This document shows, piece by piece, positions 18,146-62,877 of a DNA stretch of 64,000 bases (positions within the stretch are counted from its first letter, which is position 1; each line of letters starts with the position of its first letter). Under the pieces are notes generated by a model. That model searched no databases. It was given only the letters and a program-made list of their open reading frames with translations, and was not told where the DNA came from. The stretch comes from Macrostomum lignano. Taxonomy: Eukaryota. A program made the translations under genes and the position numbers. The stretch covers positions 186,001 to 250,000 of the forward strand of contig NIVC01000762.1 of the NCBI GenBank assembly GCA_002269645.1. Reading direction: 5' to 3'.

Positions 18146-21100
18146 TTAATACATAAATTTGTGTGGGTGTGACGAAGAGCAAGTTACTCGCTTACAAGTA
18201 GGACAGGCGAATTTGCAACACTGTTTGCACCAGAGGTAGCCGTTGCTTGCCGGTCTCAATCCGTGCCCACAATCTCCAACCAACTGCAGACTTGAATTTT
18301 GCGGCAAATCGCGATGCAAATATTCACTGCGGAAATCACCTAGACGAAGACCGCCAGAAGCAACAGAAGAACCAGGATTGCCGGCCAACAATCGCAGGTG
18401 ATTAACAGCAGTTCTTCGGTCATCAACAGACCAGCTTTTTGATTTGCTTCCCCAGATGCGATCTTCCAACCACTTAGCATGTTCGGAGTAGTCAAGACTA
18501 CTTGAAAGAAAGCATCTATAACATGCCGGACAGTTTATGTCAAACTTGTCACGGCATCCATCGACTAGCTTACGAAAAACATAAGTGGAGAAGCAATCTT
18601 GGCACAGAGAACAAGAGCATGTCGGAGGATCAATCTTCTCAAATTGGTCTTTGTCTAGACGGCACTTCGAACAAGAAAATTTAGAAGCATCTTTGACAGC
18701 GGCAGATGGCTCAGGAAAGCGCTCCCGTTGCCTCCAGTCAGACAGCTTCTGGTCGAAGCGCTCAAGGATGGACGCCGATTCTGCATCACCGAGCTTTTGG
18801 CGAATTCGAAGCCGTGCATATTCATAATGTTCATTCTCGTTTCTTCTATCAATGAAGGGGCGCGAACAGAAGCAAATAAAGTCATTGAGAAAAAAATAAC
18901 TGCGTCCGATTGCTTTCCAAAAACAGTCCACGCATATTTTGCAGCCACAAACTTTTACTTCAAACGGATCAGTCTCCTCAACCTTGCGTCGGCATTTACA
19001 GCAAGTAAAAGAGACCGATGGTTTCGAATTTTCTGGTACAACTCCAGCCATTTCCCAGGCGCTACTTGAGAATTCAGCTGGCCTGGAAGAAATACTTTTT
19101 ACTTGGTCCGATGCAGCTCTGCAAGCTTGGTCATAGGAAAGGCCGTGATCCCTCATAAGTCCATCAACTCTATCGTCAATTTGATGTCGCTCAAAATCAA
19201 ATTCACCAGGTGACCTATTTCTTCTAACGCTCAAATGACTCTCCGGTTGGATTTCAAAATTGCAAACTTCACAAATAGTGGCAGTTAACTGATTTTTAAA
19301 AGTACATTTCGGACACTGACCAGCCTCTAAAGGTTCACCATTAGTACCCTCGTTCGGCACACTGCTCGTTGCAGACTGTACCTCAGTGTTTCTAGTAGCA
19401 GCTTCATTAACTGCAGAATCGCCGCTTCTATTATAATGAGCAGTTTCAGCTCCACAGAAAGGTCTGCTGTAATCATTAGCGACAGCTCCACCACTTGAAT
19501 ACTCAGAAGGCTGGGATCTTGCCGAAGAAGCACCTTGAATAGGAACAGCATCAAGCTGTTCATCACAACCATTACACCTTAATGAAAGCGAGTCATTCAG
19601 CAATGTGCATTTTACACACAGGACTTTGCCGGTAGAAGCCTTAATCTTCTCAACAACATCAGCAAGGCTGCTTGTCTTCGAGCACACTTGGCAAATAAGG
19701 CGATCATTTTTCGTCTTGTCAGAGTTACCGCTGAACTCGTTTATTGCAGTGCAATAAGCACATGTCCAAGGAATACCAGTCACCTGGCCGGGATTGTGAC
19801 TGCCGACGCTTAAGCCTTCATTTGTCTGGTCGACAGAAAAAACACGTTGAACCATTACTGGCTGGCCAGAATCGCGTTCTCTCGTTGGCTGGCCAGAATC
19901 GCGTTCTCTCGTTGGCTGGCCAGAATCGCGTTTTCTCGTTGGCTGACCAGAATCGCGTTCTCTCGTTGGCTGGCCAGAATCGCGTTCTCTCGTTGGCTGG
20001 CCAGAATCGCGTTCTCTCGTTGGCTGGCCAGAATCGCGTTCTCTCGTTGGCTGGCCAGAATCGCGTTCTCTCGTTGGCTGGCCAGAATCGCGCTTTTTCT
20101 TTGGCTTGTCAGAATTGCGTTTTCGCGATGGCTGACCAGAATCGCGTTCTCTCATTGGCTGGCCAGAATTGCGTTCTCTCATTGGCTGTCCAGAATCGCG
20201 TTCTCTCATTGGCTGGCCAGAATTGTGTTCTCTCATTGGCTGACCAGAATCGCGTTCTCTCATTGGCAGACCAGAATCGCGTTCTCTCGTTGGCTGGCCA
20301 GAATCGCGTTCTCTCGTTGGCTGGCCAGAATCGCGTTCTCTCGTTGGCTGGCCAGAATCGCGCTTTTTCTTTGGCTTGTCAGAATTGCGTTTTCGCGATG
20401 GCTGACCAGAATCGCGTTCTCTCATTGGCTGGCCAGAATTGCGTTCTCTCATTGGCTGTCCAGAATCGCGTTCTCTCATTGGCTGGCCAGAATTGTGTTC
20501 TCTCATTGGCTGACCAGAATCGCGTTCTCTCATTGGCAGACCAGAATTGCGTTCTCTCATTGGCTGACCGGAAGGTTCAATGTACATCTCACAAACAGAG
20601 GCAGTTAATGGATTTTCTAAAGTACATCTCGGGCTCTGACCGGCTTCTAAAGTACCACCATCAGTACCTCCATTCAGTCCATTGCTCGTTGCAGACTGTA
20701 CATCAGAAGTATCGTCCCACTCGTCCAGCAACTGAAGCATTCTGTTAGTCTCGTCAACTCCGATCTCAGACTCCAACTCGAGCACTTGAATCTTCATCAA
20801 CTCGCGAGCCTCAAAATCGCCAGTCCACGCCACTCCGCACACCTGACATTCCAAGCGGCTGGGCAGAGATCGCACGAAGCTGCCAAAACAAGCTGAGCAC
20901 AGCTCACAGCCGCAGCTACTCATGCTAGTCAGCTTCAGTTGTGGCATCTCATTGTTGCACTTGCTGCACCTGCATTTCAGCTTGCTAAGCAGCTCAGCAA
21001 TGTCAAAGCAGGCAAAATCGCTGTTCTGAATCGCATTGATGAGATCGGACTCGCTGAACTCTTTGAACTCGACCAGATCTTTGAGCTGGTAGAATCGCTC

Positions 21101-21295
21101 AGCCACGACTGGGTCGCAGCGGTCCAATGCAGAGGGCAGCTTCAGCTCCACAACCTTGTGATTCAAGTCTCCGTGATGCAGCTGGTAACACAGTCTGCAC
21201 ATGAAGCCGTAACGACACTCGGCATCGATGCACTTGAAGCTGCCAATGTTGCGGAAGCAGATGTGGCACAGACTTGGGCCTGCTCGAGCGGCCAT
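18146..21295 (-). CDS. HOIP-related zinc-finger protein A (1049 aa): variant B-box, helical segment, RING-like, 10-aa repeats, NZFs, two more RING-like domains, no RING2
   Basis: Single ORF with CxxC/NZF motifs (WTCAYCTAIN, CVKCTLLN, CPKCTFKN). The pre-RING segment FKEFSESDL is shared with cluster paralogs. Acceptor cttcag 6 nt before the ATG. Confidence 0.85.
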   Translation of the reverse strand: MAARAGPSLCHICFRNIGSFKCIDAECRYGFMCRLCYQLHHGDLNHKVVELKLPSALDRCDPVVAERFYQLKDLVEFKEFSESDLINAIQNSDFACFDIAELLSKLKCRCSKCNNEMPQLKLTSMSSCGCELCSACFGSFVRSLPSRLECQVCGVAWTGDFEARELMKIQVLELESEIGVDETNRMLQLLDEWDDTSDVQSATSNGLNGGTDGGTLEAGQSPRCTLENPLTASVCEMYIEPSGQPMRERNSGLPMRERDSGQPMREHNSGQPMRERDSGQPMRERNSGQPMRERDSGQPSRKRNSDKPKKKRDSGQPTRERDSGQPTRERDSGQPTRERDSGLPMRERDSGQPMREHNSGQPMRERDSGQPMRERNSGQPMRERDSGQPSRKRNSDKPKKKRDSGQPTRERDSGQPTRERDSGQPTRERDSGQPTRERDSGQPTRERDSGQPTRKRDSGQPTRERDSGQPTRERDSGQPVMVQRVFSVDQTNEGLSVGSHNPGQVTGIPWTCAYCTAINEFSGNSDKTKNDRLICQVCSKTSSLADVVEKIKASTGKVLCVKCTLLNDSLSLRCNGCDEQLDAVPIQGASSARSQPSEYSSGGAVANDYSRPFCGAETAHYNRSGDSAVNEAATRNTEVQSATSSVPNEGTNGEPLEAGQCPKCTFKNQLTATICEVCNFEIQPESHLSVRRNRSPGEFDFERHQIDDRVDGLMRDHGLSYDQACRAASDQVKSISSRPAEFSSSAWEMAGVVPENSKPSVSFTCCKCRRKVEETDPFEVKVCGCKICVDCFWKAIGRSYFFLNDFICFCSRPFIDRRNENEHYEYARLRIRQKLGDAESASILERFDQKLSDWRQRERFPEPSAAVKDASKFSCSKCRLDKDQFEKIDPPTCSCSLCQDCFSTYVFRKLVDGCRDKFDINCPACYRCFLSSSLDYSEHAKWLEDRIWGSKSKSWSVDDRRTAVNHLRLLAGNPGSSVASGGLRLGDFRSEYLHRDLPQNSSLQLVGDCGHGLRPASNGYLWCKQCCKFACPTCKRVTCSSSHPHKFMY
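19856..20570 (-). repeat. Coding 30-bp repeat (RERDSGQPxR) with a higher-order block duplication
   Basis: About 24 units; the block containing the RKRNSDKPKKK variant occurs twice. Confidence 0.95.
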
Positions 21296-23189: not shown

Positions 23190-25310
23190 TTAATGCATAC
23201 ATGTGTGTGGGTAAGAAAAAGTGTCAATTATTCGCTTGCAAGTAGAGCAGGCAAATTTGAAACATTGATTGCACCAGAGATAGCCATATTTTTCCTGCTC
23301 CAACCTGTGCCCACAATATCCAACCAACTGCAGACTTGAATTTTGCGGCAAATTGCGATGCACAGATTCACTGCGGAAATCACTTTCTTGACGATGACCA
23401 GAAGCAACAGAAGAACCAGGATTGCTGGCCAACAATCGCAGGCATTTAACAGCAATTTCTCGTTCACTAATAGATAAGTTTGTTGATTTGCTTGCCCAGA
23501 TGCAATCTTCCAACCATTTAGCATGTTTTGAGCAGTCAGACGTACTTGAAAGAAAGCATCTATAACATGCCGGACACTTTATTTTATACTTGTCACAGCA
23601 TCCATCAACCAGCTTACGAAAAACATCAGTGGAAAAGCAATCTTGGCACACGGAACAAGAGCATGTCGGAGGACCAATCTTGTCACATAAGTCTTTGTCT
23701 AGATGGCACTTCCGACAAAAAAATTTAGGAGCATATTTGACAGCGGCAGATGGATCAGAAAAGCCTTCCCGTTGCCTCCAGTCAGACAGCTTCTGTTCGA
23801 AGCGCTCAAGGATTGATGCCGATTCTGCATCACCGAGCTTTTGGCGAATTTGAAGCCGTGCGTTACTGTAATGCTCATTACGATCTCTTTTCTCTTTTAA
23901 CGCGCGTGAACAGAAGCAAAATAAGGCACCAAGACAAACACTACTGATTTCAATTGCTTTACAGAAGCATTTCATGCATATTTTGCAGCCGCAAATTTTT
24001 ACCTCAAAAGGATCAGTCTCTTTAACGTTACGTAGGCATTTACAGCAAGCAAAACAGACCGCTGGTTCGAAAGTCTCTGGCACAACTCCAGCAATTTCCT
24101 TGGCGCTACTTGAGAATTCAGTTGGCCTGACAGAAGTGTCATCTACTTGGTCCGATGCAGCTCTGCAAGCTTGCTCATAGGAAAGGCCATTTCCCATAAG
24201 TCTATAAACTCTATCGTCAATTCCATGTCGCTCACGATCAAATTCACCAGATGACCTATTCCTTACAACGCTCAAATGACTTGCCGGTTGGATTTCAGCA
24301 TCGCACATCTCACAAACAGTGGCAGTTAATCGGTTTTTAAAGGTACATTTCGGACACTGATCGTCTTCTAAGGTATCACCATCAGTACCACCATTCAGCA
24401 CACTGCTCGTTGCAGACTGCACATCAGTGTTTCTAGCAGCAGCTTCATGACCTGCAGAATCGCCGGTTCTATCATAATGAGCAGTTTCAGCTTTAAAGAA
24501 AGGTCTGCTGTAATCATTAGCGACAGCTCCACCACTTGAATACTCAGAAGGCTGGGATCTTGCCGAAGAAGCACCTTGAATAGGAACAGCAACAAGCGTT
24601 TTATCACAACCATCACATTTTACTGAATGTGAGTCGTTTAGCAATGTGCATTTTACACACAAGACTTTGCCAGTAAAAGCCTTGACGCTCTCTACAACAT
24701 CCGCGAGGCTGCTGGTCTTCGAGCACACTTGGCAGGTAAGGCGATCATTTTTTGTGGTGTCAGAGTTACAGTTGAAGTCATTTATAGCAGTGCAATGAGC
24801 ACATGTCCAAGGTATACCAGTCGCCTGGCCAGAATTATGACTGCCGACGCTTAAGTCTTCATTCCTCTTGTTGACAGGATTAACATGTTGACCTATGTTT
24901 GGCTGGTCAAAATCCCGTTCTCTCATTGGTTGGCCAGAATCGCGCTGTCTAATTGGCTTGTCAGAATTGCGTTCTTTCATTGGCTGGTCAAAATCGCGTT
25001 CTCTCATTGGCTGGCCAGAATCACGCTCTCTCATTGGCTGGCCAGAATCACGCTCTCTCATTGGCTGGCCAGGATCACGTTCTATCGTTGGAAAGTTAGA
25101 TTGACGCCCGTCACTCGATAGTACAGAGTTTAAACCTGTATGAGTTGCACTTTGCTGAATATCAATTCGGTGATGGTCTTTCCTGGCAGGATGTCCATGC
25201 CAAATGTTATCGCAGCTTAAGCACAGCCGCTTCCTACTGCAACTAGCAACGGAGCACTCTTTTTCCGCTGGGTCGTCGCCGCAAAATTGGCACGGCTCGG
25301 TTTCTGACAT
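23190..25310 (-). CDS. HOIP-related zinc-finger protein B (706 aa): HOIP-type B-box, short repeat, NZFs, two RING-like domains, no RING2
   Basis: CQFCGDDPA..C...LCLSCDNIWHGHP.R..H resembles the HOIP B-box. The rest is colinear with the C-terminal part of protein A, and the flanks are also duplicated. Confidence 0.85.
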   Translation of the reverse strand: MSETEPCQFCGDDPAEKECSVASCSRKRLCLSCDNIWHGHPARKDHHRIDIQQSATHTGLNSVLSSDGRQSNFPTIERDPGQPMRERDSGQPMRERDSGQPMRERDFDQPMKERNSDKPIRQRDSGQPMRERDFDQPNIGQHVNPVNKRNEDLSVGSHNSGQATGIPWTCAHCTAINDFNCNSDTTKNDRLTCQVCSKTSSLADVVESVKAFTGKVLCVKCTLLNDSHSVKCDGCDKTLVAVPIQGASSARSQPSEYSSGGAVANDYSRPFFKAETAHYDRTGDSAGHEAAARNTDVQSATSSVLNGGTDGDTLEDDQCPKCTFKNRLTATVCEMCDAEIQPASHLSVVRNRSSGEFDRERHGIDDRVYRLMGNGLSYEQACRAASDQVDDTSVRPTEFSSSAKEIAGVVPETFEPAVCFACCKCLRNVKETDPFEVKICGCKICMKCFCKAIEISSVCLGALFCFCSRALKEKRDRNEHYSNARLQIRQKLGDAESASILERFEQKLSDWRQREGFSDPSAAVKYAPKFFCRKCHLDKDLCDKIGPPTCSCSVCQDCFSTDVFRKLVDGCCDKYKIKCPACYRCFLSSTSDCSKHAKWLEDCIWASKSTNLSISEREIAVKCLRLLASNPGSSVASGHRQESDFRSESVHRNLPQNSSLQLVGYCGHRLEQEKYGYLWCNQCFKFACSTCKRIIDTFSYPHTCMH

Positions 25311-25552
25311 GCTTTGCAAGGTTTCATGAAGGTATTAACTTTTATTATAGAGGCTATGGTTTCTTAAGAAAAGCAACGAAAAAATGTTATTAACTGTACC
25401 ATGCATAGAGACTACTCCAGTGTATTTTATGACATCACTACTAGTACTCTGATGGAGATAGGCTAATTACCTAAATATATAAGACAAGCGTATAACTGGA
25501 ATGTTTCTGTTCTGACTATTAGTGCTTCTGGCAGTTAGTGTCAGAAGGCTTG

Positions 25553-25960
25553 CGATCAGATGCTAAGGCTCATGGGGAATCGCTCATAAGCCAAGGCTCA
25601 TGGGGAATCGCTCAGATGCTGAGGCTCATGGGCAATCGCTCAGATGCTAAGGCTCATGAGGGAATCGCTCAGATGCCAAGGCTCATAGGGAATCGCTCAG
25701 ATGCCAAGGCTGATGGGGAATCGCTCAAATGCTAAGGCTGATGGGGAATCGCTCAAATGCTAAGGCTCATGGCGGAATCGCTCAGATACCAAGGCTCATG
25801 GCGGAATCGCTCAGATACCAAGGCTCATGGGGGAATCGCTCAGATGCTAAGGCTCATGGGGAATCGCTCAGATGCTAAGGCTCATGGGGAATCGCTCAGA
25901 TATCAAGGCTCATGGGGAATCGCTCAGATTCTAAGGCTCATGAGCGAATCGCTCAGATGC
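25553..25960. repeat. Minisatellite, 28 bp unit (gatgctaaggctcatggggaatcgctca)
   Basis: About 14 units just upstream of gene B. Confidence 0.95.
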
Positions 25961-27371
25961 CAATTTAATTTAAATTAAATTGAAAAGAAACAAACGCAGT
26001 AACAATGCAGTCAATTCTAAAATACACGTTCTGGAATATCTGGTATATTTGATTTCAATCAGAGAAATAAATTACAGACAAATTTGTGAAATAAAATATT
26101 TAATTTGACACAATTACCGGTAGCTGATTGGCAGCAAGAAAAGGCAAGTTTGCCTGCTTAGCAACATGTGATAACAAGACAAGTACGTTAATGTTTTCAA
26201 CCATTTTGACCTTTTGTAATAGCCGAGTAAATATTCAATCACTGAAGCCAGCATATTAGGAACCTATAGTAATCATATAACATTATAAATAGTATATAAA
26301 CTAGCAATCTAGTACCCCCTTCGGGGCGCTCAAATGAGCAAGGAGCAAATATTCATGCAAATCTATTACAAACCAAATTTTATAAGAACCTATTCCTTTA
26401 TCAGTTTTATAAATCACCTTATTCTAGTTAAACTATCACAGACAAAGATGTTTGCTATAAATAATCTCTTTTTTTTCGAAAAAATAACAAAAACAGCAAA
26501 ATAAAGCCTTCACAAAGATAGCAGGCACCCCCCTAAAAAGTACGAGTATCCCCGAGAACTTTGACCAACAACCAAGTAAATTAATGCTCAAGATAGCAAT
26601 TGGAAGCAGAATAGCAATATCTCAAAGCTAAAATTATTAAAGCATTTTTCCTCATAATAAATCATTAAACATTGCATTACAAAGTACGTTACAACAACGA
26701 AACCATAGGAAATTATATCTGATTGAATAAGCATTGATGAAAGCCTAGCTAGATACTCGTAGTTAGATAATTGAGCAGCAAAAGAAAATAATAATAATAA
26801 CAAACTTTCGGCACGTGACGACAGCTAAAGCACAGACGGATAAGATTGGTATTGGAATTTCTCAACCTACTGAATTCGAAATGACATTACATGAAACTGA
26901 AAGAGTATGTACGTCAGCATTTAATATATCAACTGGATTATTTGATTAACTGGAAGCACTGACACTCATCGGGATCAAAATCAGAATAAAAAAGCCGGCT
27001 ATATTTCAGAGACGTCGTTAGTAGTGTAGCCAAGTGGCAAGTGTCAAATTTTACATAGAAGTAGCTTTGTTTCTAAGAAAAAAGACAGATTGAAAAGAGT
27101 TTGAATTATATATTTTATGTTTGTCTACTTCAGAGTAGTTGATTTATCAAATATTAAAACGTGAGCTCAAGAAATAACATTACTAAAAATGTAAATAGTT
27201 TCAAAGATCATTCGTGGTAGCAGGAATTTATGATAATGTAGAGAATAAAAAAGATTAAAGATACTTATGCTTGTTTAAGAACATATGTAGTTTAAAGAGT
27301 AAACGTGTTAGTACAGATATCCGCTCCCACATTACGCGCGTTCCCACTTACTCTTAGATTGTTTCAACAAC

Positions 27372-30300
27372 CTAAACCAACGTTTCTTTCTCTTTGCTAA
27401 CCCGCAGCGGTGGCACCATTTCTTTCAGCCGGTCGCGGTAAACTCTCACCACCTTCTCTTTCGCAGCAGAAGCAGGGTTGGAGGCTTTGACTTTTGGCAG
27501 GGCCAAACCAAACCTTTTAAACATCTCCAGCAGCTCATTCTCATTGGCAACATCTACCAAATCGAGCTTGTGCGCATTGATGAGCTGAATTATATACTCA
27601 CGGTAGTGCCTGTCACATATACCTGGCTTTTTATGAGTAACTTTTTCAGTGCAAGGATATACACCAATCAGATTTCGTTCCATCTTCAAATCAGGAAGCT
27701 CGCAAGCTTTGCCAACCTTTGAGCATGTTTCGTTCAATTTAACCTTATTTCTCCTCAGAAAATCAAGTAGAGTCGTCTGTTTTGCTTGCTTTAAGTTAAA
27801 GAAGCACTGGCGATGGTGGTGCACATGAAGTCCTTTAATCGAGCAGCCACCGTGAGCTCTCTTCTGAGGGCTTCGGCAAAATGGACAGAATGAATGTCCA
27901 CATCTGCAGTGAAACACAGGAACTCCAGATTTGGATACTCGCTGGTAGCAAAGACTGCAGTCTTTGTCTGGGCAAACCAATTCAGAAGTCAGAAGCTCCA
28001 TCATCTGATCGTACAGCTTTGCGTCAGTAGGCCAGAGACTTTGGTTCTGAGCAGCTATGTGCATTTTGTTATAATCTTTTTGATGAATACCTGCTGCATG
28101 AACCCGATAACTGTTGCAGTCCATCTGTTGGTGATCAGTCCAGAAGCCAGAGCATTTCTTGCAGACATCCTGATTGCAATGTTTGCAGTAACTTTGGAAC
28201 TGTTGAGTGCCCTTTTTCGGTAGACCACTATTTCCATGGGGACAATAACCATTCGAAGTGACAACTGGAACTGCCGGAGCATCTTTTGAAGATTTTGAGT
28301 TTTTCCCTTTCTTGCCTGGGGCTTCGACCACTACCCAACTTTCGTCACCATTTTTGTTTGAATTACCTCCGCGCCCGGAAGCTTCAAGGTGCGCCACTGC
28401 ATACTCCACAGTGTCAGAGCCAAGCACATCCGCCATTTCCACCAGCTGCAACATCATGAAATCCCGACTGTCCTCATCATCGCACACACAATGGCAGACA
28501 GGGCACTGAATTCTGCTGCTTTTCAGATCAAGAAGAAATTTCCGAAAACACTCTGGACACATCTGGCACTCGCATGCTGCCATGGCAACAAGTTTATGAC
28601 GCGGTAACTCATTCGAACAGCGGCTGCACTTGCGACGCAGTTGGCTCATCAGAGCATCGTCTTCGAACGCCAGGCCGCCACACGACTCAATCGCAATCGC
28701 AAGGTCCGATTCAGAAAACTCTTTAAACTTGGGCATGCTTTTGACAACCAGAATTCTCTCTGCTACCCAGTCTTCCACTCTGAGCTGCGAAGCCAGGTTT
28801 TGAGCTCTATCGGACCATTCAGTAAAGCCTGTGCTGGAATCGCTTCCAGCCGCTCCGACTGCATCACTGGCGGCTGCTGCGGCTGCGGAGGTCAGCATGG
28901 ACGCTGCAGCAACGGCTTCACTGCGAGCGACTGCGCCTCCTTTAGTGGCGCCGCCACTGAGTTCGGTAGTCTGTGAGCAAGCAGAGCAAATTGCAAGGCT
29001 ATTTTCTGGCTGCGATGGAGCCGGGTTTACCAGCGTGCAGTGCTTGCAGACCCAGTTGCCATCACTTTGAGAATTGTTTTCTTGGAAATTTTGAGAGGCT
29101 ACTTTTGACGGAATATTTGTTGCATGATGCTCATGTAGTTGCCGATTCTGTTCTTGCTGTTGCTCTCTCTGCTGCTGCTCTCTCTGCTGTTGCTCTCTCT
29201 GCTGCTGCTCTCTCTGCTGTTGCTCTCTTTGCTGTTGCTCTCTCTGCTGCTGCTCTCTCTGCTGTTGCTCTCTCTGCTGTTGCTCTCTCTGCTGTTGCTC
29301 TCTCAGCTGTCGCTCTCTCTGCTGTTGCTCTCTCTGCTGTTGCTCTCTCTGCTGTTGCTCTCTCTGCTGTTGCTCTCTCTGCTGTTGCTCTCTTTTCTGT
29401 TGCTCTCTCTGCTGTTGCTCTCTCTGCTGTTGCTCTCTCTGCTGTTGCTCTCTTTTCTGTTGCTCTCTCTGCTGTTGCTCTCTCTGCTGTTGCTCTCTCT
29501 GCTGCTGCTCTCTCTGCTGTTGCTCTCTCTGCTGCTGCTCTCTCTCTTGTTGCTCTTTCTCACGTAGCTCTCTTTGCTGCTGCTCTCTTTGGTGTTGCTC
29601 TCGCTGCGACAGCTCTTTCTGCCGTTCAACCTGTTGTGGATTTCTCCGCTGCTGCTGAACATTATTGAGATACTGTCTCTGCTGCTCAAAAAGATCATTT
29701 GCTTTATCTTGACCTTGAAATTGACCTTGCTGATTTTTTACGTCTAAAAATGAATTCTGGTGCGCATTCTTATTGCTTCCAAAAGCTAGGTCACTATCAT
29801 TAGTATCTGTACGGCCAACACTGTGAGCAGCATTGTCAGGCTTCTGGTGAGCCGGTGCCCGAGAATCGAATGTTCCGCTCGATCCTCTATCAGACTCGCT
29901 AGGCAAAACAGCTGACGAATAAGAAGCAGACTGAGAGGAACCACCAGCTACTGTCGGTTTAGCAACACCTGTGCCAGAATTTGACCGATTGTTGTTGCTA
30001 CCTGCAGGAGGACTGGCTTCCTTCAACTCAATCGGAGGTGTTCCGTCACTCTTGCCACAAATGCTGCATATCCTTCGCGTAGAATCTTCGTTGATGAAAG
30101 TGCAGAATTGGCACTGCCAGCCACCGCTGCTGCTAGAAGCGGGTGGCGGAAATGTTGGTTGAGGCGGTGGCGGTCGTTTCGGCGGCGGGCGGCCTGACTG
30201 GGGAGATCGCGGAGCGGCGACGGGCGCCGCTGAAGCACCAGCGGCCGGCCCGGGCTGGTAGGGTCTGACCTGGTGATTTTTCCGATTCGGATGGTTGTGC

Positions 30301-31620: not shown

Positions 31621-31935
31621 TCAAGACGGAGTATCAGCTTTGCCGCACAGGCTCAGCAATAGCAATGCAAAGAGCAGAACTGCTGGACCATTAAAAATCC
31701 AAAATTCGATGTTAAAAAATCTGCGCGATGAAACTTCAGTGCTAGACGGAGTAATTGCAAGGCCAGACTGCTGCTGATGATAAGGTTCGGTCACGTGATT
31801 TTTACGATTGGGGTGTCCGTGCCAGAGCGAGTCGCAGCTGCGGCACAGAATGTTGCGACTGCAGGCGGGCGTACTGCAGTAGACTGCGGCTGGATTGTCG
31901 CCGCAGAAACTGCAGTCTACTATTGATGACGTCAT
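31621..31935 (-). CDS. Short B-box-only ORF D (104 aa) or gene fragment
   Basis: MTSSIVDCSFCGDNPAAVYCSTPACSRNILCRSCDSLWHGHPNRKNH is close to the N-terminus of C; the sequence after it is unrelated. Confidence 0.55.
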   Translation of the reverse strand: MTSSIVDCSFCGDNPAAVYCSTPACSRNILCRSCDSLWHGHPNRKNHVTEPYHQQQSGLAITPSSTEVSSRRFFNIEFWIFNGPAVLLFALLLLSLCGKADTPS

Positions 31936-32034
31936 GGAGAGCAAGTGGAACTGGGCGGCGAGAGTGGTCAGCATGAGAAAATATAAAATACTTTCTTCAA
32001 TAATAATAGCTCGTAATAAAAAAATGATAACACA

Positions 32035-32326
32035 TGCCTCAATTGGGCCAGATGTGCAACCGACAGGCGACAGCTCAGCCGCAGCTATTGCACCGCGCAT
32101 CTGAAGACTGCGTACGGCTGTTCAGTCTAAGGACTGGGGGGGGGGGTCGCCACACCCAACCCTCAATAACCCGAGCTAATGCTGGCACCCATTTTACACC
32201 TAGGTGAACTGAAGCAATGCAGAGTTAAGTGTCTTGCTCAATCAAGGACACAAATTGTTCCGAGTGGGTCGAGAATCGAATCCCCGACCTTCAAGTCATG
32301 AGCCCGACGCTTCAACCACTAGGCTG
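32035..32326 (-). mobile_element. tRNA-derived SINE, family 1
   Basis: Colinear with the other family-1 copies. Confidence 0.85.
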
Positions 32327-51650: not shown

Positions 51651-52005
51651 GCTAGTTATGGCTAGTCTAGTCTAGTTATGGCTAGTCTAGTCTAGTTATG
51701 GCTAGTCTAGTCTAGTTATGGCTAGTCTAGTCTAGTTATGGCTAGTCTAGTCTAGTTATGGCTAGTCTAGTCTAGTTATGGCTAGTCTAGTCTAGTTATG
51801 GCTAGTCTAGTCTAGTTATGGCTAGTCTAGTCTAGTTATGGCTAGTCTAGTCTAGTTATGGCTAGTCTAGTCTAGTTATGGCTAGTCTAGTCTAGTTATG
51901 GCTAGTCTAGTCTAGTTATGGCTAGTCTAGTCTAGTTATGGCTAGTCTAGTCTAGTTATGGCTAGTCTAGTCTAGTTATGGCTAGTCTAGTCTAGTTATG
52001 GCTAG
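51651..52005. repeat. Homogeneous 20-bp tandem array (ctagttatggctagtctagt)
   Basis: About 17-18 essentially identical units. Confidence 0.98.
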
Positions 52006-53301: not shown

Positions 53302-55134
53302 TTACACCATAGCTTCTTCGTCTTCGCTAAGTGGCAACATTTCCTTCAGCCGTTCGCGGTAAATACTCGTTTTTTCTCTCGCAGCAGAAGCAGGGTAGGA
53401 GGCTTTGACTTTTGGCAGGGCCAAACCAAACCTTCTGAACATCTCCAGCAACTCATTCTCACTGGCAACATCCACCAAATCGAGTTTGTTTGCATTGATG
53501 AGCTGAATTAGACACTCACGGTAGTGCCTGTCGCATATACCTGGGTTTTTATAAGTAACTTTTTCGGCACAAGGACAGACTTTCAGCTTTCCGTCCATCT
53601 TCAAATCGGGAAGCTCACAACCTTTGCCAAACTTTGAGCATACGTCGCTCACTTTGACCTTATTTCTCCTCAGCAAATCAAGTAGAGTCGTCTGTTTTAC
53701 ATGCTTCAAATTAAAGAAGCACTGGCGATAGTGGTGCACATGAAGTCCTTTAATTTGGCAGTCTTCGTGAGGTCCAATCTGACGGCTTTGACAAAATGGA
53801 CAGAATGAATTTCTGCAACTACAGTGAAACACAAAAACGCCAGACTTGGACACACGCTGATAGCAATGACTACATTTTGGGCAAACCAAATGAAAAGTCA
53901 GAAGCTTCATCATCTGATCGTACAGCCTTTTGTCAGTAGACGAGTGACCTTGGTTCTGAGCAGCTATGTGCATTTTGTTATAATATTTTTGATGAATACC
54001 TTCTGCATGCTTCCGATAACTGCCGCAGTCCATCCGATGGTGAACAACCCAGAAGCCGAAGCATTTCTTGCAGACATCCTGTTTGCAAAGTTTGCAGTGA
54101 CTGTCGGATTGTCAAGTGCCCATTTTCGGTAGTCCAATATTTCCATGGGGACAATAACCATTCGAAGTAACAACTGGAACTGTCGAGACATGTTTTGAAG
54201 ATTTTGAGTTTTTTTTCCTTTCCTGTCTGGGGCTTCGACCACTTCCCAACCTTCGTCGATATTTTGGCTTGAATTACCTCCAAGCACAAGGACTTCAAGG
54301 CGTGCCACTGCATACTCCACAGTGTCAGAGCCAAGCACATCCTCCATTTCCATCAGCTGCATCCTCATGAAATCCAGACTGTCTTCATCGTCGCACGCCA
54401 CCTGGCAGACAGGGCACTGAATTCTGCTGCTTTTCAGATCAACAAGGAATTTCTCAAAGCACTCTGGACACATTTGGCACTCGCAAGCTGCCATGGCAAC
54501 AAGTTTGTGACGTGGCAACTCATTCGAACAGCGGCTGCACTTTCGAAGCAGTTGGCTCATCAGACGATCAGAGCATCGTCTTCGAACGCCAGCCCGCCAC
54601 ACGACTCAATCGCCACTGCGAGGTCCGATTCGGAAAAAAAGTTTAAACTTGGGCATACTTTTGACAACCAAAACTCTCTCTGCTACCCAGTCTTCCACTC
54701 TGAGATGCAAAGCCAGGTTTTGAGCTCTATCGGACCATTCGATAGAATCGCTTCCTGCCGCTCCGACTGCAGCACGGCGGCTGCTGTGGCTGCGGAGGTC
54801 AGCATGGACGCTGCAGCAGCGGCTTCACTGCGAGCGACTGCGCCTCCTTTAGTGGTTCCACCACTGAGTTCGGTAGTCTGTGCGCAAGCAGAGCAAATCC
54901 CAAGCCCAGTTTCTGGCTGCGATGGAGCCGGGTTCACCAGCGTGCAGTGATTGCAGACCCACCTGCCGTTGCTTTGAGAATTGTTTTCTTGGAAATTTTG
55001 AGAGGTTACATTTGAAGGAACATTTGTTGCATGATGTCAATGTAGTTGCCGATTCTGTTCTTGCTGTTGCTCTCTCTGCTGCTGCTCTCTTTGCTGTTGC
55101 TCACTCTGCTGCTGCTCACTCTGCTGCTGCTCAC

Positions 55135-55169
<35 letters not shown>

Positions 55170-56170
55170 CTCTCTCGCGTTGTTCTCTCTGCTGTTGCTC
55201 TTGCTGCTTTTTCTCTCTCTCACGTTGCTCTCTCTGCTGTTGCTCTCTCAGCTGTTGCTCTCTCTGCTGTTGCTCTCTCAGCTGTTGCTCTCTCTGCTGT
55301 TGCTCTCTTTTCTGCTGCTCTCTCTGCTGTTGCTCTCTCTGCTGTTGCTCTCTCTGCTGTTGCTCTCTCTGCTGCTGCTCTCTCTGCTGCTGCTCTTTCT
55401 GCTGTTGCTCTCTCTGCTGTTGCTCTCTCTGCTGTTTCTCTCTCTGCTTTCGCTCTCTCTCACGTTGCTCTCTCTGCTGTTTCTCTCTCTGTTTTTGTTC
55501 TTTCTGCTGTTTCTCTCTCTGCTGTTGCTCTCTCTGCAGCTGTTTTTCTCTCTGCTATTGTTCTTTCTGCTGTTGCTCTCTCTGCTTTCGCTCTCTCTCA
55601 CGTTGCTCTCTCTGCTGTTTCTCTCTGTTTTTGTTCTTTCTGCTGTTTCTCTCTCTGCTGTTGCTCTCTCTGCAGCTGTTTCTCTCTCTGCTTTTGTTCT
55701 TTCTGCTGTTGCTCTCTCTGCTTTCGCTCTCTCTCACGTTGCTCTCTATGCTTTTGCTCTCTCTGCTGTTGCTCTCTCTGCTTTCGCTCTCCTTCGTTGG
55801 CGGAGCCGTCCGTCCATGCCGTGATCCCGATCTCCAGGGCCGCTCTGGCTTGTTCTTCTGCTGCTGCTCTCTGCAAAAAATCGCTTCCTGCCGCTCCGAC
55901 TGCAGCACTGGCGGCTGCTGTGGCTGCGGAGGTCAGCATGGACGCTGCAGCAGCGGCTTCACTGTGAACGACTGCGCCTCCTTTAGTGGCGCTACCACTG
56001 AGTTTGGTAATGTATGCGCAAGCAGAGCAAATTACAAGCCCAGTTTTTTGCTGCGATGGAGCCGGGTTCACCAACGTGCAGTGATTGCAGATCCAGCTGC
56101 CTTTGCTTTGAGAATTGTTTTCTTGGAAATTTTGAGAGGTTACATTTGAAGGAACATTTGTTGCATGATG
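53302..56170 (-). pseudogene. Gene I, 3' part: duplicated NZF/QRE units and a decayed C-type RING1-pseudoRBR-LDD
   Basis: Versus C and G: 2-bp loss at about 55620, TGA at 55037-55039, 1-bp loss at about 54775, 8-bp insertion at about 54560, extra A at about 54205, nonsense TGA at 54112-54114. Confidence 0.85.
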
Positions 56171-58264
56171 TCAATGTAGTTGCCGATTCTGTTCTTGCTG
56201 TTGCTCTCTCTGCTGCTGCTCTCTTTGCTGTTGCTCTCTCTGCTGCTGCTCTCTTTGCTGTTGCTCTCTCTGCTGTTGCTCTCTCTGCTGTTTCTCTCTC
56301 TGCTTTCGCTCTCTCTCACGTTGCTCTCTCTGCTGTTTCTCTCTCTGTTTTTGTTCTTTCTGCTGTTTCTCTCTCTGCTGTTGCTCTCTCTGCAGCTGTT
56401 TCTCTCTCTGCTTTTGTTCTTTCTGCTGTTGCTCTCTCTGCTTTCGCTCTCTCTCACGTTGCTCTCTATGCTTTTGCTCTCTCTGCTGTTGCTCTCTCTG
56501 CTTTCGCTCTCTCTGCTTTCGCTCTCCTTCGTTGGCGGAGCCGTCCGTCCATGCCGTGATCCCGATCTCCAGGGCCGCTCTGGCTTGTTCTTCTGCTGCT
56601 GCTCTCTGCAAAAAATCGCTTCCTGCCGCTCCGACTGCAGCACTGGCGGCTGCTGTGGCTGCGGAGGTCAGCATGGACGCTGCAGCAGCGGCTTCACTGT
56701 GAACGACTGTGCCTCCTTTAGTGGCGCTACCACTGAGTTTGGTAATGTATGCGCATGCAGAGCAAATTACAAGCCCAGTTTTTTGCTGCGATGGAGCCGG
56801 GTTCACCAACGTGCAGTGATTGCAGATCCAGCTGCCTTTGCTTTGAGAATTGTTTTCTTGGAAATTTTGAGAGGTTACATTTGAAGGAACATTCGTTGCA
56901 TGATCTCCATGTAGTTGCCGATTCTGTTCTTGCTGTTGCTCTCTCTGCTGCTGCTCTCTCTGCTGTTGCTCACTCTGCTGCTGCTCACTCTGCTGCTGCT
57001 CACTCTGCTGCTGCTCTCTCTGCTGTTGCTCTCTTTGCTGTTGCTCTCTCTGCTGCTGCTCTCTCTCACGTTGCTCTCTCTGCTGCTGCTCTCTTTGCTG
57101 TTGCTCTCTCTGCTGCTGCTCTCTTTGCTGTTGCTCACTCTGCTGCTTCTCTCTCTGCTGCTGCTCTCTCTGCTGCTGCTCTCTTTGCAGTTTCTCTCTC
57201 TGTTGCTGCTCTCTCTGCGGTTGCTCTCTCTGCTGTTGCTCTCTCAGCTGGTCTCTCAGCTGTTCTTCTCTCTCCTGTTGCTCTCTCAGCTGGTCTTTCA
57301 GCTGTTCTTCTCTCTCCTGTTGCTCTCTCAGCTGGTCTTTCAGCTGTTCTTCTCTCTCCTGTTGCTCTCTCAGCTGGTCTCTCAGCTGTTCTTCTCTCTC
57401 CTGTTGCTCTCTCAGCTGGTCTTTCAGCTGTTCTTCTCTCTCCTGTTGCTCTCTCAGCTGGTCTTTCAGCTGTTCTTCTCTCTCCTGTTGCTCTCTCAGC
57501 TGGTCTCTCAGCTGTTCTTCTCTCTCCTGTTGCTCTCTCAGCTGGTCTTTCAGCTGTTCTTCTCTCTCCTGTTGCTCTCTCAGCTGGTCTCTCAGCTGTT
57601 CTTCTCTCTCCTGTTGCTCTCTCAGCTGGTCTCTCAGCTGTTCTTCTCTCTCCTGTTCCTCTCTCTGGTGCTGGTCGCTCTGTTGCTGCTCCAACATCTG
57701 CAGCAGTCTCGCCGCCTCATCATTACCTAGCTGAGACTCCAGCTCGTACACAAGAATCATGGTCGTGTTTCGAGCTACATGGTCTCCAGACCAGGCCACT
57801 CCACACACCGGACACTCCAGCTGCCCTGGCATTCCGGACAGGAAGCTGCAGAAACAGCCACAGCACAGCTCGCACTCGCACGTCGCCATGTGAAACAGCT
57901 TGTGACGCGGCATCTGCTTTGAGCACTTGCAACACTGGCTTCTCAAGTGCGCTAACAGAGCTACCACATCATCGCAAGCCTTCCCACAAGACTGGATGGA
58001 GTCAATGAGGTCAGTATCGGAGAAGTCCTTGAACTCCCTAAGCTGCTTCACTTCCTGGAGTCGCTCGGTCAGCCAGGTGTCGCAGCGACGCTGGGCCTGA
58101 GGCGGCGGCGGCAGCACCTCGACTCGGTGATTCTCAACGCTGTGCCAGTTGGTGTGGCAGGACTCGCAGATCAGTTGGAAGCCGCAGCCGGCCTCCAGGC
58201 ACCGGATTGAGGCGCCTGGGCGGCCGCAGATGAGGCAGCGCTCGGCGAGCACTCGGTGAGCCAT
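56171..58264 (-). CDS. Gene I, 5' part (697 aa): variant B-box, helical segment, RING, 14-aa and QQREQ repeats, NZF
   Basis: N-terminus paralogous to protein A. TTTCAG acceptor at about 58305. Ends at the same TGA context as G. Confidence 0.75.
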   Translation of the reverse strand: MAHRVLAERCLICGRPGASIRCLEAGCGFQLICESCHTNWHSVENHRVEVLPPPPQAQRRCDTWLTERLQEVKQLREFKDFSDTDLIDSIQSCGKACDDVVALLAHLRSQCCKCSKQMPRHKLFHMATCECELCCGCFCSFLSGMPGQLECPVCGVAWSGDHVARNTTMILVYELESQLGNDEAARLLQMLEQQQSDQHQREEQEREEQLRDQLREQQEREEQLRDQLREQQEREEQLKDQLREQQEREEQLRDQLREQQEREEQLKDQLREQQEREEQLKDQLREQQEREEQLRDQLREQQEREEQLKDQLREQQEREEQLKDQLREQQEREEQLRDQLREQQQREQPQREQQQREKLQREQQQREQQQREKQQSEQQQREQQQREQQQREQQQREQREREQQQREQQQREQQQREQQQSEQQQSEQQQSEQQQREQQQREQQQEQNRQLHGDHATNVPSNVTSQNFQENNSQSKGSWICNHCTLVNPAPSQQKTGLVICSACAYITKLSGSATKGGTVVHSEAAAAASMLTSAATAAASAAVGAAGSDFLQRAAAEEQARAALEIGITAWTDGSANEGERKQRERKQREQQQREQKHREQRERERKQREQQQKEQKQREKQLQREQQQREKQQKEQKQREKQQREQRERERKQREKQQREQQQREQQQREQQQREQQQREQQQREQQQEQNRQLH

Positions 58265-59599
58265 GCGTTGCACAACCAAGTTTGCTTGTTGGTCAGGAGC
58301 GCTGCTGAAATTGAAAAAGGTTAGGAGCTTTGTACTCAATCGAGAGCAACTGTGGATTGACAAGTTTGAGTAATCTAGCTACGAGAGCATAAACTAAAGA
58401 GAAACAAAGTGATCTCTAGAGGGTTTTTTCGAGAAATATTCAGGTAGGGTGTTGATTTCTAGGCGATATGAAGAATTAATAAGTAAATAATAAATATTAA
58501 AGTCAATAAATATTTCAACGCATTTAGCACTTTGAGATGAATTGTCGAGTTTATTTGGCAACGAAAAAGAACAAAGTTTTGGTATTCCCACTGGGGAAAC
58601 CAAAGTCAGCTGTTTACCCTAAAGGCTAAGGAGCAATTTAAACCATCTGCAATACAAAATCATCTCATTCAGTATGATACGGTAAGTGCTGTAGTTGTAA
58701 ACCAGAAAAGTGCTAAAAAATCTACAAATGCCAATTAGACTACAAACTCACTAATCATTAAAGTTCTGCCTAAGCTCGCCTAGCCTCAACACCCAGCCCT
58801 AGCACAGTGGCGCAGGTCACGTCCTCCGTATTATCTGAGAGTTGCACTACTGTATTCGTGCCTGTCCATGCTTTTAACCTGTTAATGTGCATTGATTGTT
58901 TTCTACCTTTACCAAAACTATTGATTTTTCACGACCCTTTCATTACGATTTAGTTTTTTTAAAAACTGAGTTTTGATACCGCATCACACAGTGAACCATA
59001 ATTTGAAGTTGAGAAAAGAACAAAAACAAAAACGTTTCGTACCTTATAAATTAACACTTCAGCAAAACGCTTTAACAGCAAAACATTAAAATCTGGAGTA
59101 TCTTAATAATGAAAAACAAAGACTATATGGATACAGCACAGCTATCTTTGTCTTGAATCATACATTTAAATTTAAGGTAAATATCACGTTTATAAAATAT
59201 AATACCATTGTATAAAATCACAGAGAATATTTTGGTATATTCTGTGTTGAAAAACGGAATAATTGAACTTTTTGTTTACAAAAACAACTCAGCATTGAAT
59301 CACTCAAATTTGGTTGGAACAAATCCATCACATTTCTCAATGCAGTGTTGGAAGCCCTGTACTCGACAGGAGTTCTAGTCGAGTCCTGCGTAGACTGTAG
59401 GCCTTCCCTAGATTTCGATCTGAAAGGGTGAAGTTTTTCGCGCTAAGAAATATTGTCTTACTCTACATGACACAATTAAATAAAACTTCTATGGTGTAAT
59501 CTATTGTCCGCCCTACTCGTCAAGTTGCTATACAGCAACAATCAATGAAAATGCATAATCAAACAAAAGCTGAGGATACGACCAGCCAATAATAGGAAG

Positions 59600-60982: not shown

Positions 60983-61068
60983 CTGGATAGGGGAATTTAT
61001 TCGTCAAGACGTTAGCGACATCTCTTTACTACGTGCAAAGACAAAATATACCTTCTAGAATAGCTTAC

Positions 61069-62178
61069 TGAGGTTTGCTTTCGCCTTGAAGATGCGACGT
61101 TAGCAACGCCTACACGGGGCTTCTTGTTGTCGCCACGCATGGCGCTGGCCAGGGCCTCTTTGAGGTGCGACTCGCACAGACCCGCCTCGACCACCGGCCT
61201 TCCGCACTTCCCGTCCTCCAGACCGCCTCCTGACGTCTCCTTCTGCTCCTGGACGCTGCACCGACCTCCAGCGCCCGCCACTCCGACAAGCTCCAGCTGA
61301 ACGCCCCGCTCCAGCGCCGTCTGCCGAACCTTCTCCAACGGCCAGTCTCTGAACGTCTCCACGCACTCCGACCCGTGGTGGCAGTGCAGTCCCTTGTTCC
61401 CGCCGCAGCACTCCTGTCGAACAAACAGACTGCCGCAGTCGCTGCAGAACTCCGCCTTGCACTGCCTGCACGTCAGGTGAAGACAGCCGCCTCGAGACAG
61501 CTCGAACTGGAAGCCGCACTTTGGACACGAGCTGCCCCGACTCTCCAGGAACTGCGCCAGTCCGCGCTCGCTCAAGTCCGTCTGCTGACGCCACTCGCCG
61601 AACTGCTGGCAGCTCACGCCTCGGTGCCGCTCGTGCCACGCCTTGCCGCACTTCCTGCACGTCTCCTTGCCGCAGTGCGGGCACCGCACCTGCCTGTCGT
61701 GGTGCTCCGACACCTCGAAACCGTTCGAGCACCCGCTGCACCAGCAGAAGTTGTCCGTCAGCTTCAGTCGCCAGTCGCGCAGTCTCTCATCCAGCTTCTT
61801 CATCACTGCGGGCTTCAGCTGGCCCGCCAGCAGCCTCCGAAGCAGCGGAAAGTACTCGCACGAAGTGTCCGTCAGAGCTCGGTCGTCCAGCTCGTCGCAC
61901 ACCGGACACGTCAGCACCGACACCGAGCTGTCGTTCATCAGGCGCACCTCGATCTGCTGGCACAGACAGTCGCTGCAGACCTCGCAGCCGCACAGGGGAA
62001 CTTCGACCAGCTTCTTCTCGTCGGTGCACACCGGGCACTCTGCTGATGTCTGCAGCTCTGAGAGGTCAGTGGACTTTCCGCACACTGAGCAGATCAGCCT
62101 TCTGTGCAGTTGGCGACCCTGTGCTCCATCATTGATGAAGGTACAGTGCGGACACTGCCACTGCGATCGGCGTGGCAT
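61069..62178 (-). CDS. Gene J exon 1: NZF, intact F-type RBR, truncated LDD (499 aa if spliced to exon 2)
   Basis: RBR nearly identical to F, G and H. Donor TCA|GTAAGC at 61068 gives an 86-nt phase-0 intron. TTTCAG acceptor about 20 nt before the ATG. Confidence 0.88.
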
Positions 62179-62877
62179 GTTAGATTGTTCAATCCAACTG
62201 AAATGAATTTTAAGAAACAATGACTAGCCATTTAGAATAGAACCGGGAGTTTTAAAGCTCCTAAGCCTTTTCATACTTACGCTAAGCTCAAACTTTGTCG
62301 CTAAAAGAAGTGGCTGTGCTTTGAAGTAAAAAAAAGAGCAAAGTAGAAGACTCTGAAATGTTGCTCGAAAAAATAACCGATATATTTTTAGACAAACAGG
62401 CACTTTTGTAATAACACATCAGCTGATAAATAGATCAGCACGAAGCGTGTAACACACAAAGTGTCAATATCATTCAAGCAGTTTTATCAGGACCAAAATG
62501 AAGGGTTAAATAACTAGAAATGAGCACATTGTGACAAATACGATTGCCTCCAGTCATTATACTGTAATTGAATTATAGTCAATCATGCCATTAACCAACT
62601 GCCATTATCATTTGCTAATATAGAAAACTTTAAGTATAATTATTGCATGGCTCAGTATGTCAACAGTACAACCAGCAACATTGAGACATCAACGCTGAGA
62701 CCAAAAAAGTGAAAAAGCAAATGATTAAAACGAAAATACTATAAATTTGCACACCTGCGACAAAGACAAAAAGTCGCACAAGTCTTCATGAAACATGAAA
62801 TGCTGCATCAGGTCTTCGATTTTGCACTAATAGCTGGTGAAAAACCACAAAAACTTTAGCATGATCCAAAGCAGCGT

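Follow-up and report, generated by a model that had tools for sequence, protein, structure and literature searches.

Evidence for a lineage-specific tandem family of intronless HOIP/RNF31-like genes with recombined modules in the flatworm Macrostomum lignano

Introduction

No enzyme other than HOIP (RNF31), the catalytic subunit of LUBAC in humans and other vertebrates, is known to make Met1-linked ubiquitin chains, and one or two copies of it are present in most animals studied. Besides its RING1-IBR-RING2 (RBR) module and the LDD that follows, HOIP contains a PUB domain, which binds OTULIN and SPATA2, and a UBA pair, which binds the UBL domains of HOIL-1L and SHARPIN. Here, we describe a tandem array of HOIP-derived genes in a stretch of 64,000 nucleotides (hereafter the window) from the flatworm Macrostomum lignano. 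The window aligns at 100% identity with contig NIVC01000762.1 (assembly GCA_002269645.1), window position x corresponding to record position x + 186000. Within the RING2 of HOIP, we take His887 to be a catalytic residue. The catalytic cysteine is Cys885 (PMC6963773), and the Arg935/Asp936 pair presents the acceptor ubiquitin (PMC5090701). Residue numbers were checked against the human HOIP sequence, in which Arg935/Asp936 lie within the motif FYLRDW.

Three systems come closest to the array. The Drosophila protein LUBEL (CG11321) is an invertebrate HOIP orthologue with B-box, NZF, and UBA and without PUB. It is encoded by a single very large gene, for which a tandem family, dead paralogues, or double-RBR proteins have not been described. 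Neither HOIL-1L nor SHARPIN is needed for the isolated RBR-C fragment of LUBEL to make linear chains (PMC5090701). In fish, sharks, and amphibians, a second RNF31-like ("lubel"-type) paralogue combines the RBR-LDD with a different set of N-terminal domains, so that HOIP cannot be called strictly single-copy across animals; this is one dispersed, ancient extra copy, and the flatworm copies group with each other, not with it. The sponge Ephydatia muelleri has a HOIP-family protein (KAL5514972.1; P0178) with a tandem run of RING1-IBR units (six matched stretches) before one RING2, and 36% identity to the E-type flatworm module described below. Its repeats lie within one predicted protein and are not diversified into architectures; they represent either a real internal amplification or a mis-joined tandem array. 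Since its RING1-IBR units are amplified, this sponge protein shows that module amplification in the HOIP family is not unique to the flatworm. In the literature, we found no mention of RNF31/HOIP in M. lignano, nor of a tandem HOIP family in any animal.

The array shares with human and vertebrate HOIP the order of RING1-IBR-RING2 and LDD (37-42% identity over the RBR-LDD), a B-box-like zinc finger, and NZFs. The full-length copy L also has the HOIP-type UBA, and the equivalents of Cys885/His887 and Arg935/Asp936 are common to HOIP, L, and the minimal copy D; LUBEL is the model for a possible mode of action of L and D. In contrast to the one HOIP gene, the flatworm has about twelve tandem intronless copies, which, L included, lack a recognizable PUB and for the most part also the HOIP UBA. 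The equivalents of C911 and C916 are deleted in D- and L-type copies (nine residues). Furthermore, unlike HOIP, the array comprises truncated-LDD, Cys-to-Ser, Cys-to-Val, and RING2-less variants as well as long low-complexity coils.

Results

Gene Content and Family Assignment

Ten long open reading frames (ORFs) between 18146 and 62220, all on the minus strand and all HOIP-derived, form the array within the window. The initial annotation, made without database searches, had listed ten same-strand loci with mixed motif combinations. The ten minus-strand ORFs could be confirmed, and B-box, NZF, RING1, IBR, RING2, and LDD are indeed combined differently in each locus; the count, however, did not hold. 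Two of the ORFs (41748-43373 and 43473-45467) are one fused gene, F, divided by a single in-frame TGA, and three HOIP-derived pieces had been missed, namely the frameshifted C-type copy H, the B-box fragment C', and the 3' tail of K (Table 1). L, a full-length HOIP gene of the parent type, lies about 6 kb past the window end and was likewise absent from that annotation.

The copies are built from four types of modules. The D-type (D and the C-terminal half of G) comprises a helical pre-RING1 domain, RING1-IBR-RING2, and a complete LDD. The E-type (E, F1, the N-terminal half of G, and J) comprises an NZF, a short RING1, IBR, RING2, and an LDD that breaks off at the position equivalent to residue ~1012 of the 1072 residues of human HOIP. 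The C-type (the C-terminal half of C, F2, and the broken H) consists of a helical domain, RING1, a degenerate IBR, a dead RING2, and a full LDD, and the A-type (A, B, and the N-terminal part of I) of a B-box-like zinc finger, a helical domain, RING1 units, and NZFs, without RING2 or LDD.

The proposed membership in the HOIP clade was borne out by sequence ranking, fold ranking, profile matches, the LDD (PF18091), and a tree. Against PDB sequences, the best HOIP match (5edv in each case) reached E = 4e-87 for D, 3e-53 for the E-type J, and 1.7e-20 for the C-type C; in the same search, Ariadne/ARIH reached ~1e-4 at best and HOIL-1 gave no match. AlphaFold (AF2) models of the E-type (J) and C-type (C) modules had a mean pLDDT (predicted local distance difference test) of ~74, and HOIP was their best Foldseek match (E = 3.7e-22 and 2.4e-15, compared with 1e-9 and 1e-3 for the next family). 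The C-type RING2-LDD model could be superposed on the HOIP catalytic core with template modelling (TM) scores of 0.65-0.70 over ~200 residues. These E-value and fold rankings substitute for a tree with HOIL-1, Ariadne, and Parkin as outgroups. A repeat-free profile of eight window RBRs matched 117 proteins, all of them named RNF31/lubel or, where unnamed, carrying HOIP-type Pfam domains; a whole-protein search with G was swamped by a low-complexity repeat (11 matches). D is 39-42% identical to RNF31 of molluscs, fish, and mammals, and 100% or 99% identical to annotated M. lignano proteins.

In Pfam, the LDD scored above the gathering threshold in D (84 bits), the C-terminal half of G (109), F2 (40), L (93), and, as partial matches of 27-30 bits, E, J, and K. 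It was accompanied by IBR/IBR_1 in D, E, G, and J; F2 showed the LDD only, F1 showed IBR/IBR_1 without LDD, and the LDD was absent from A, B, and I. The latter three and the N-terminal part of C had no Pfam matches and are tied to the other loci by tblastn (E = 1e-22 to 1e-45), A being 37% identical to C and 45% to I across B-box/RING1. A, B, and I have RING1 only and by themselves match HOIP RING1 only weakly; they belong to the family only through their paralogue C and each other, to which they are clearly homologous. The NZF motif occurs in every locus, with RanBP-ZnF scores weak and just under the cut-off, and the B-box motif occurs in A, B, C, C', and I, with weak Pfam B-box/ZZ matches (for C', an ANCHR-like match at E = 4e-4). 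The B-box zinc finger of L is 46% identical to that of mammalian HOIP. Pfam found no PUB in any window copy, in agreement with the initial annotation, and none was found in the N-terminal 199 residues of L by Pfam and PDB sequence searches at E up to 10. The HOIP UBA pair (PF16678) is absent from all window copies and present in L and in the unlinked P0107.

A neighbour-joining tree (357 columns, 200 bootstraps) with HOIPs of sponge, Hydra, molluscs, an annelid, arthropods, an echinoderm, and vertebrates united all flatworm copies in one clade with 84% bootstrap. Subclades comprised D, the C-terminal half of G, and L (97%), the E-type copies and K (100%), and C and F2 (100%). An exhaustive phmmer search of 1.84 billion representatives revealed no relatives of the E-type RBR above 42% identity other than its own cluster, i.e., none outside M. 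lignano, and together with the monophyly this upholds the proposed lineage-specific expansion. At least one more HOIP-like protein of M. lignano has the HOIP UBA: P0107 (UniProt A0A1I8H790) shares 39% identity with D, and the tree places it as sister to the D/L group. It is encoded elsewhere in the genome; as it was absent from every locus retrieved, it was rejected as an array member.

Sister Contigs

The window contains no Ns and no gaps, and paralogues within the array differ by 2-30% at the DNA level. The same gene series recurs at 85-97% DNA identity on two further contigs of the assembly, NIVC01000110.1 and NIVC01000691.1. Since the M. lignano karyotype is partly duplicated and the assembly holds 180 Mb in duplicated blocks (PMC5730564), these are homeologous or allelic copies of the window array, and they independently confirm its existence. 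The array is thus very unlikely to be an assembly artefact.

Gene order is L-K-J-I-H-G-F-E-D-C-B-A on NIVC01000762.1 (twelve genes) and L-K-J-[I::C]-E-D-C-B-A on NIVC01000110.1 (nine genes), where a frameshift divides A. The fully traced contig NIVC01000110.1 retains this nine-gene core, with which the stretch of five genes visible on the third contig agrees. The coding sequence of D is 100% identical between the window and L001 10001-11602 (NIVC01000110.1), whereas the 4.6 kb around D are only 97% identical, which points to strong constraint or recent gene conversion.

Catalytic Residues

A division into active, dead, and scaffold variants had been proposed, and it is visible in the catalytic residues. 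D and L keep Cys885/His887 and Arg935-Asp936 together with a complete LDD. Both pairs are also kept in E, F1, the N-terminal half of G, J, and K, in which the last ~60 residues of the LDD are gone. The C-terminal half of G (47616-49115), 89.6% identical to the RBR-LDD of L at the amino acid level, retains Arg935-Asp936 and a complete LDD, and its catalytic Cys is replaced by Ser (TCT at 48102-48104 vs. TGT in L). In C, F2, and H, both Cys885 and His887 are replaced by Val and Arg935-Asp936 by Lys-Gln, with the LDD complete. A, B, and I have no RING2, no Arg-Asp pair, and no LDD. On the sister contigs, the C-type catalytic position is occupied by Val in the C orthologues and by Tyr and Ser in two I::C fusion genes; as all three residues occur there, it appears free to vary. 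The zinc ligands of RING1, IBR, and RING2 are invariant across all eight RBRs.

Module Shuffling and Gene Conversion

The RBR core of the E-type genes E, F1, G, and J is 96-98% identical (97-98% in DNA between J and the other three), with a synonymous divergence (dS) of 0.015-0.045. As these genes have a dS of 0.16-0.18 in the N-terminal linker next to the core, the core is being homogenized by gene conversion. K is 78% identical to the E-types in the RBR at the amino acid level, and the N-terminus of E on NIVC01000691.1 matches F1, not E, of the window. B is 72.7% identical to A over 542 aligned residues of the C-terminal part.

Several genes are fusions of whole modules. F consists of an E-type module fused to a C-type linker, NZF, and RBR, and G is an F-like construct in which the C-type RBR was swapped for a copy of the RBR-LDD of L. 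Upstream of E, both sister contigs carry an intact gene in which an I-type N-terminus is fused to a C-type RBR (L001, at least 1093 aa; L003, 1114 aa; L007, 1188 codons); in the window contig, this fusion is rearranged. The repeat arrays (Table 1) all lie in the linker between N- and C-terminal modules, the site of the module junctions, and all fusion junctions fall in linkers with 15-bp (REQQQ)n arrays and an internal NZF. Module shuffling, as initially proposed, is thus confirmed by the fusion genes F, G, and I::C, the duplication units, and the differing gene number between contigs. Judged by the fusion points, the gene conversion, and the nine versus twelve genes, shuffling is still going on.

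Selection and Decay

The ratio of nonsynonymous to synonymous divergence (dN/dS) ranged from 0.13 to 0.66 and did not exceed 1 in any pairwise comparison. Between contigs, it was 0.15 for D, 0.32-0.39, or more widely 0.19-0.41, for E, and 0.13 for the N-terminus of I (vs. L003). E-type genes gave 0.2-0.5, K against other E-types ~0.5, C-type pairs including F2 0.39-0.55, and A against B 0.66 at dS 0.24. In the absence of constraint, ~19 nonsense changes would be expected between A and B and ~12 between C and F2; none were observed (probability under neutrality 6e-9 and 8e-6, respectively). Within the C-type, the ratio of the corresponding proportions (pN/pS) was 0.2-0.3 in the helical domain and RING1 and in the C-terminal helices of the LDD, ~0.55 in the dead RING2, and ~1.0-1.1 in two inter-domain linkers. 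Given dN/dS below 1, the missing nonsense changes, and the low pN/pS in RING1 and LDD helices, the derived copies are under relaxed but real constraint focused on binding modules. No pairwise or sliding-window value convincingly above 1, and hence no positive selection, was found. The array had also been described as fast-evolving, which is correct only in part, given dN/dS values of 0.13-0.66 that never exceed 1.

Decay in the window contig affects H, F, and I. Compared with F2, at least four indels disrupt the reading frame of H, which is a pseudogene. The in-frame TGA truncates F after the E-type module and I after the first NZF-coil unit. At the corresponding position, which directly follows QNRQLH at the coil end, C and G have GAG/GAA, the first unit of I has GGA, and the equivalent fusion genes of the sister contigs have GGA or GGG. 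Because the TGA has identical flanks at all three sites and sense codons in the paralogues and sister contigs, it is best read as one nonsense allele copied three times; a tolerated stop is less likely.

Annotation and Transcription

GenBank models of this assembly were built only from RNA-seq-derived transcripts, with repeat-overlapping ones removed (PMC5730564). Such models exist for B/A and F1/E (both chimeric), C, C', D, the tail of H, J, K, and L, so that transcription of the array genes is indicated indirectly; all deposited array genes are named "hypothetical protein". C' is annotated as a gene in the window (112 aa) and, at the matching position, on NIVC01000691.1 (114 aa), and the last 243 codons of H (53302-54033) are annotated as an LDD-only gene. 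The chimeric models join F1 to E (730 aa, BOX15_Mlig000845g2, 45497-37852), B to A (710 aa, 25322-18146), and J' to E' (494 aa, BOX15_Mlig019423g2, L007 10001-21167), and multi-mapping reads are their probable cause. Looked up by exact sequence and by cluster, the genes gave genome-annotation proteins only and no RNA-derived contigs, and the array gene identifiers are absent from the supplements of two M. lignano papers and from the full-text literature searched.

Coordinates and Surroundings

Coordinates and layouts of the array members are listed in Table 1. To the left of A lie two tandem Cys-loop ion-channel genes (Neur_chan_LBD, Neur_chan_memb; minus strand, 244-3668 and 8744-9814), which are ~75% identical in DNA over 850 bp; A is therefore the left edge of the array. 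A LINE (long interspersed nuclear element) ORF with reverse transcriptase/RNase H lies upstream of L (L004 978-2720). Among the non-coding satellites, that at 51652-52005 is 100% perfect with 17.7 copies, and two satellite arrays sit between array genes. No Rfam families were found in the window. Plus-strand ORFs overlapping the genes (56749-58008, 38323-39381, 44247-45350, and similar) were rejected as genes, being antisense readings of codon repeats or GC-rich coding sequence.

Every member from A to L, L included, is a single ORF without introns. Against an average of ~5 introns for each gene of the M. lignano genome, this is a hint that the founder may have been a retrocopy.

Table 1. Positions and layout of the array members, repeats, and premature stops (window coordinates; positions beyond 64000 are window equivalents).
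Feature	Position	Strand	Type and size	Layout or remark
Locus A	18146-21295	-	A-type, 1049 aa, intact	B-box-like zinc finger, helical pre-RING1 domain and RING1, (SGQPMRERD)n repeat, three NZFs, two RING1-like units, IBR-like tail
27-bp repeat of A	19859-20573			encodes (SGQPMRERD)n
Locus B	23190-25319	-	A-type paralogue of A, 709 aa, intact	without the N-terminal RING1 unit of A
Locus C	27372-30407	-	C-type, 1011 aa, intact, annotated	B-box, NZF, (REQQQ)n coil, NZF, helical domain, RING1, degenerate IBR, dead RING2, full-length LDD
C'	31621-32100	-	B-box-only fragment	66% identity with the N-terminus of C; 31777-31926 corresponds to residues 2-51 of C
Locus D	33540-35141	-	D-type, 533 aa, minimal canonical HOIP	two NZFs, helical domain, RING1-IBR-RING2 (GGCMHF), FYLRD, complete LDD; without B-box, HOIP UBA, and PUB
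Locus E	37852-39852	-	E-type, ATG at 39750, 632 aa	NZF, linker, short RING1, IBR, RING2 (GGCLHL), FRDW kept, shortened LDD, tail with C-terminal NZF
F2	41748-43472	-	574 open codons	NZF and C-type dead RBR-LDD, in frame right after the TGA of F1
In-frame TGA	43473-43475	-		splits F; same codon with identical flanks at 55037-55039 and 56171-56173
F1	43476-45467	-	664 aa	E-type ligase module, then (REQQQ)n coil
Locus G	47616-50933	-	double-RBR protein, 1105 aa, intact, unannotated	E-type module (Cys codon 49809-49811), short coil, NZF, RBR-LDD copy of L
Locus H	53302-55054	-	C-type copy	NZF, RING1, dead RING2, LDD; frame-shifting indels
Locus I	55037-58363	-	ATG at 58264	B-box, helical domain, RING1, 42-bp and 15-bp repeat coil, NZF; ORF stops at TGA 56171; second tandem NZF-coil unit 55037-56170
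Locus J	61012-62220	-	E-type, ATG at 62178	E-type module with own short N-terminus and tail
K 3' end	63691-64000	-	older E-type relative	(MQSMNS)n tail; remainder at 64001-66087 (L004 10446-12842)
L	67783-71349 (L004 5184-8750)		full-length HOIP, 1188 aa, single ORF, beyond the window	B-box zinc finger, two NZFs, HOIP UBA pair (29 bits), RBR with GGCLHF, LDD
15-bp tandem array	29155-29607	-	(REQQQ)n coil	further arrays at 43495-43882, 55062-55791, 56196-56526
42-bp tandem array	56940-57665			in locus I
Satellites, non-coding	12291-13265; 7445-7823; 8345-8695; 25556-25963; 51652-52005		35 bp; 26 bp; 41 bp; 28 bp; 20 bp	

Discussion

The structural and evolutionary description of the array is well supported, and we consider it likely that the array represents a real tandem family of intronless HOIP/RNF31 paralogues specific to this lineage, with the following origin and class functions. 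Growth of the array would have started from L, the full-length HOIP gene, and taken several rounds. The D-, E-, C-, and A-type modules may stem from old duplications, with synonymous divergence now saturated; segmental duplication, unequal crossing-over, and gene conversion of more recent date (dS 0.02-0.3) would then have recombined them as whole modules, with junctions in the linker that contains the (REQQQ)n repeat and the internal NZF. The functional part of this model was inferred from residue conservation and the known biology of HOIP and LUBEL. D and L would be autonomous, partner-independent linear-chain ligases, like LUBEL RBR-C in vitro, because every residue known to be needed for Met1-chain synthesis is present. 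The E-type copies are probably active RBR ligases, as the thioester Cys, the His, and the Arg-Asp pair are kept; their linkage specificity is uncertain because the last ~60 residues of the LDD are missing. C-type copies are predicted pseudo-ligases, in which the active site is destroyed and zinc ligands, RING1, and LDD helices are conserved. C- and A-type copies may bind E2~ubiquitin and ubiquitin chains without catalysis and, via their coiled-coil repeats, could act as regulators, competitors, or scaffolds for active members.

Several observations weigh against this model. D, the C-terminal half of G, and L lack nine residues, among them the counterparts of C911 and C916, which in human HOIP lie in the zinc-finger insert preceding the LDD; even the Met1 specificity of these copies is therefore an assumption. 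The flatworm clade comes from a distance tree and is possibly inflated by long-branch attraction. The pseudogene H, the three copies of the nonsense codon, the frameshifted A on the sister contig, and dN/dS values of 0.5-0.66 are compatible with a partial loss of function. Furthermore, G, I, and F2 are without an annotated transcript or model, the chimeric models blur which single genes are transcribed, and no biochemical, expression, immune, or phenotype data were found in the literature for any copy.

Two rival explanations invoke mis-assembly and neutral drift, respectively. That few real genes were over-expanded by repeat or haplotype mis-assembly would fit the known redundancy of this assembly and the E-type RBR cores, 97-98% identical across ~930 bp; such identical stretches, however, are far below PacBio read length, flanks, N-termini, and fusion partners differ among copies, and a gap-free window with the same gene order on two independent contigs renders this explanation very improbable. 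The second holds that only L, and perhaps D, is functional, the remainder being young duplicates that drift to pseudogenes as a neutral by-product of a repeat-rich, recently polyploid genome. The frameshifts of H, the thrice-present TGA, the split A on the sister contig, the unannotated G, I, and F2, the choice of Val, Tyr, or Ser at the C-type catalytic position, dN/dS values up to 0.66, and the 180 Mb of duplicated blocks in the assembly all speak for it. Nevertheless, ORFs of 533-1105 codons have stayed open despite a dS of 0.16-0.24, where ~12-19 nonsense changes would be expected, dN/dS is below 1 in all comparisons, the zinc ligands of dead copies are invariant, and constraint is domain-specific. 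In addition, the nine-gene core is kept on the traced sister contig, with the five-gene part of the third contig matching, and D-, E-, and C-types are old, as judged from saturated dS, but still intact. We therefore regard neutral drift of the whole array as unlikely, in particular a purely neutral graveyard for the nine-gene core; H, by contrast, is probably a case of neutral decay, and the truncated parts of F and I may be so as well.

Two further readings concern what maintains the diversity. The initial annotation had likened the locus to an immune arms race, in which copies diversify under conflict with pathogens, dead and RING1-only members in this scenario being decoys for effectors aimed at HOIP and active ones diversified sensors or effectors. 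Consistent with this, the sister contigs are unlike in gene number and architecture, the derived types have a higher dN/dS than D, linker pN/pS is near 1.0-1.1, and dead copies keep conserved binding surfaces; moreover, the fold matches include PDB 7v8g, in which HOIP RING1 is bound by the bacterial effector IpaH1.4. Gene-wide dN/dS above 1 was never found, however, and the windows near 1 are disordered linkers, for which relaxed constraint is an equally good explanation. In the literature, we found no data on expression after infection and no known link between linear ubiquitin and immunity in flatworms, and recent duplication is abundant throughout the M. lignano genome. Taken together, we judge an arms race to be quite unlikely. 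Decidedly speculative, and improbable in our view, is a toolkit in which the HOIP reaction is split among members: D and L would be Met1 ligases, the short-LDD E-type would write another linkage or modify non-ubiquitin acceptors, C- and A-type copies and the Cys885Ser variant of G would trap E2~ubiquitin or chains, and the diversity would be kept by pathogen conflict or another fast-changing pressure. If true, the array would be the first linear-ubiquitin ligase system known to have several members, and it would include the first natural double-RBR enzyme.

Returning to the tandem family of HOIP paralogues as such, the array holds natural equivalents of hand-built mutants, i.e., Cys885Ser, LDD truncation, RING2-less, and N-terminally trimmed "constitutive" enzymes, and one of its proteins, G, has two RBR modules. 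M. lignano is tractable by transgenesis and RNA interference. If expressed, the copies would provide natural experiments on the role of the LDD tail, on the control of an active ligase by an RBR pseudo-ligase, and on linear ubiquitination without PUB and mostly without the UBA that binds HOIL-1L and SHARPIN. If not expressed, the array would still be a clear case of domain shuffling in intronless genes by way of low-complexity repeats and gene conversion.

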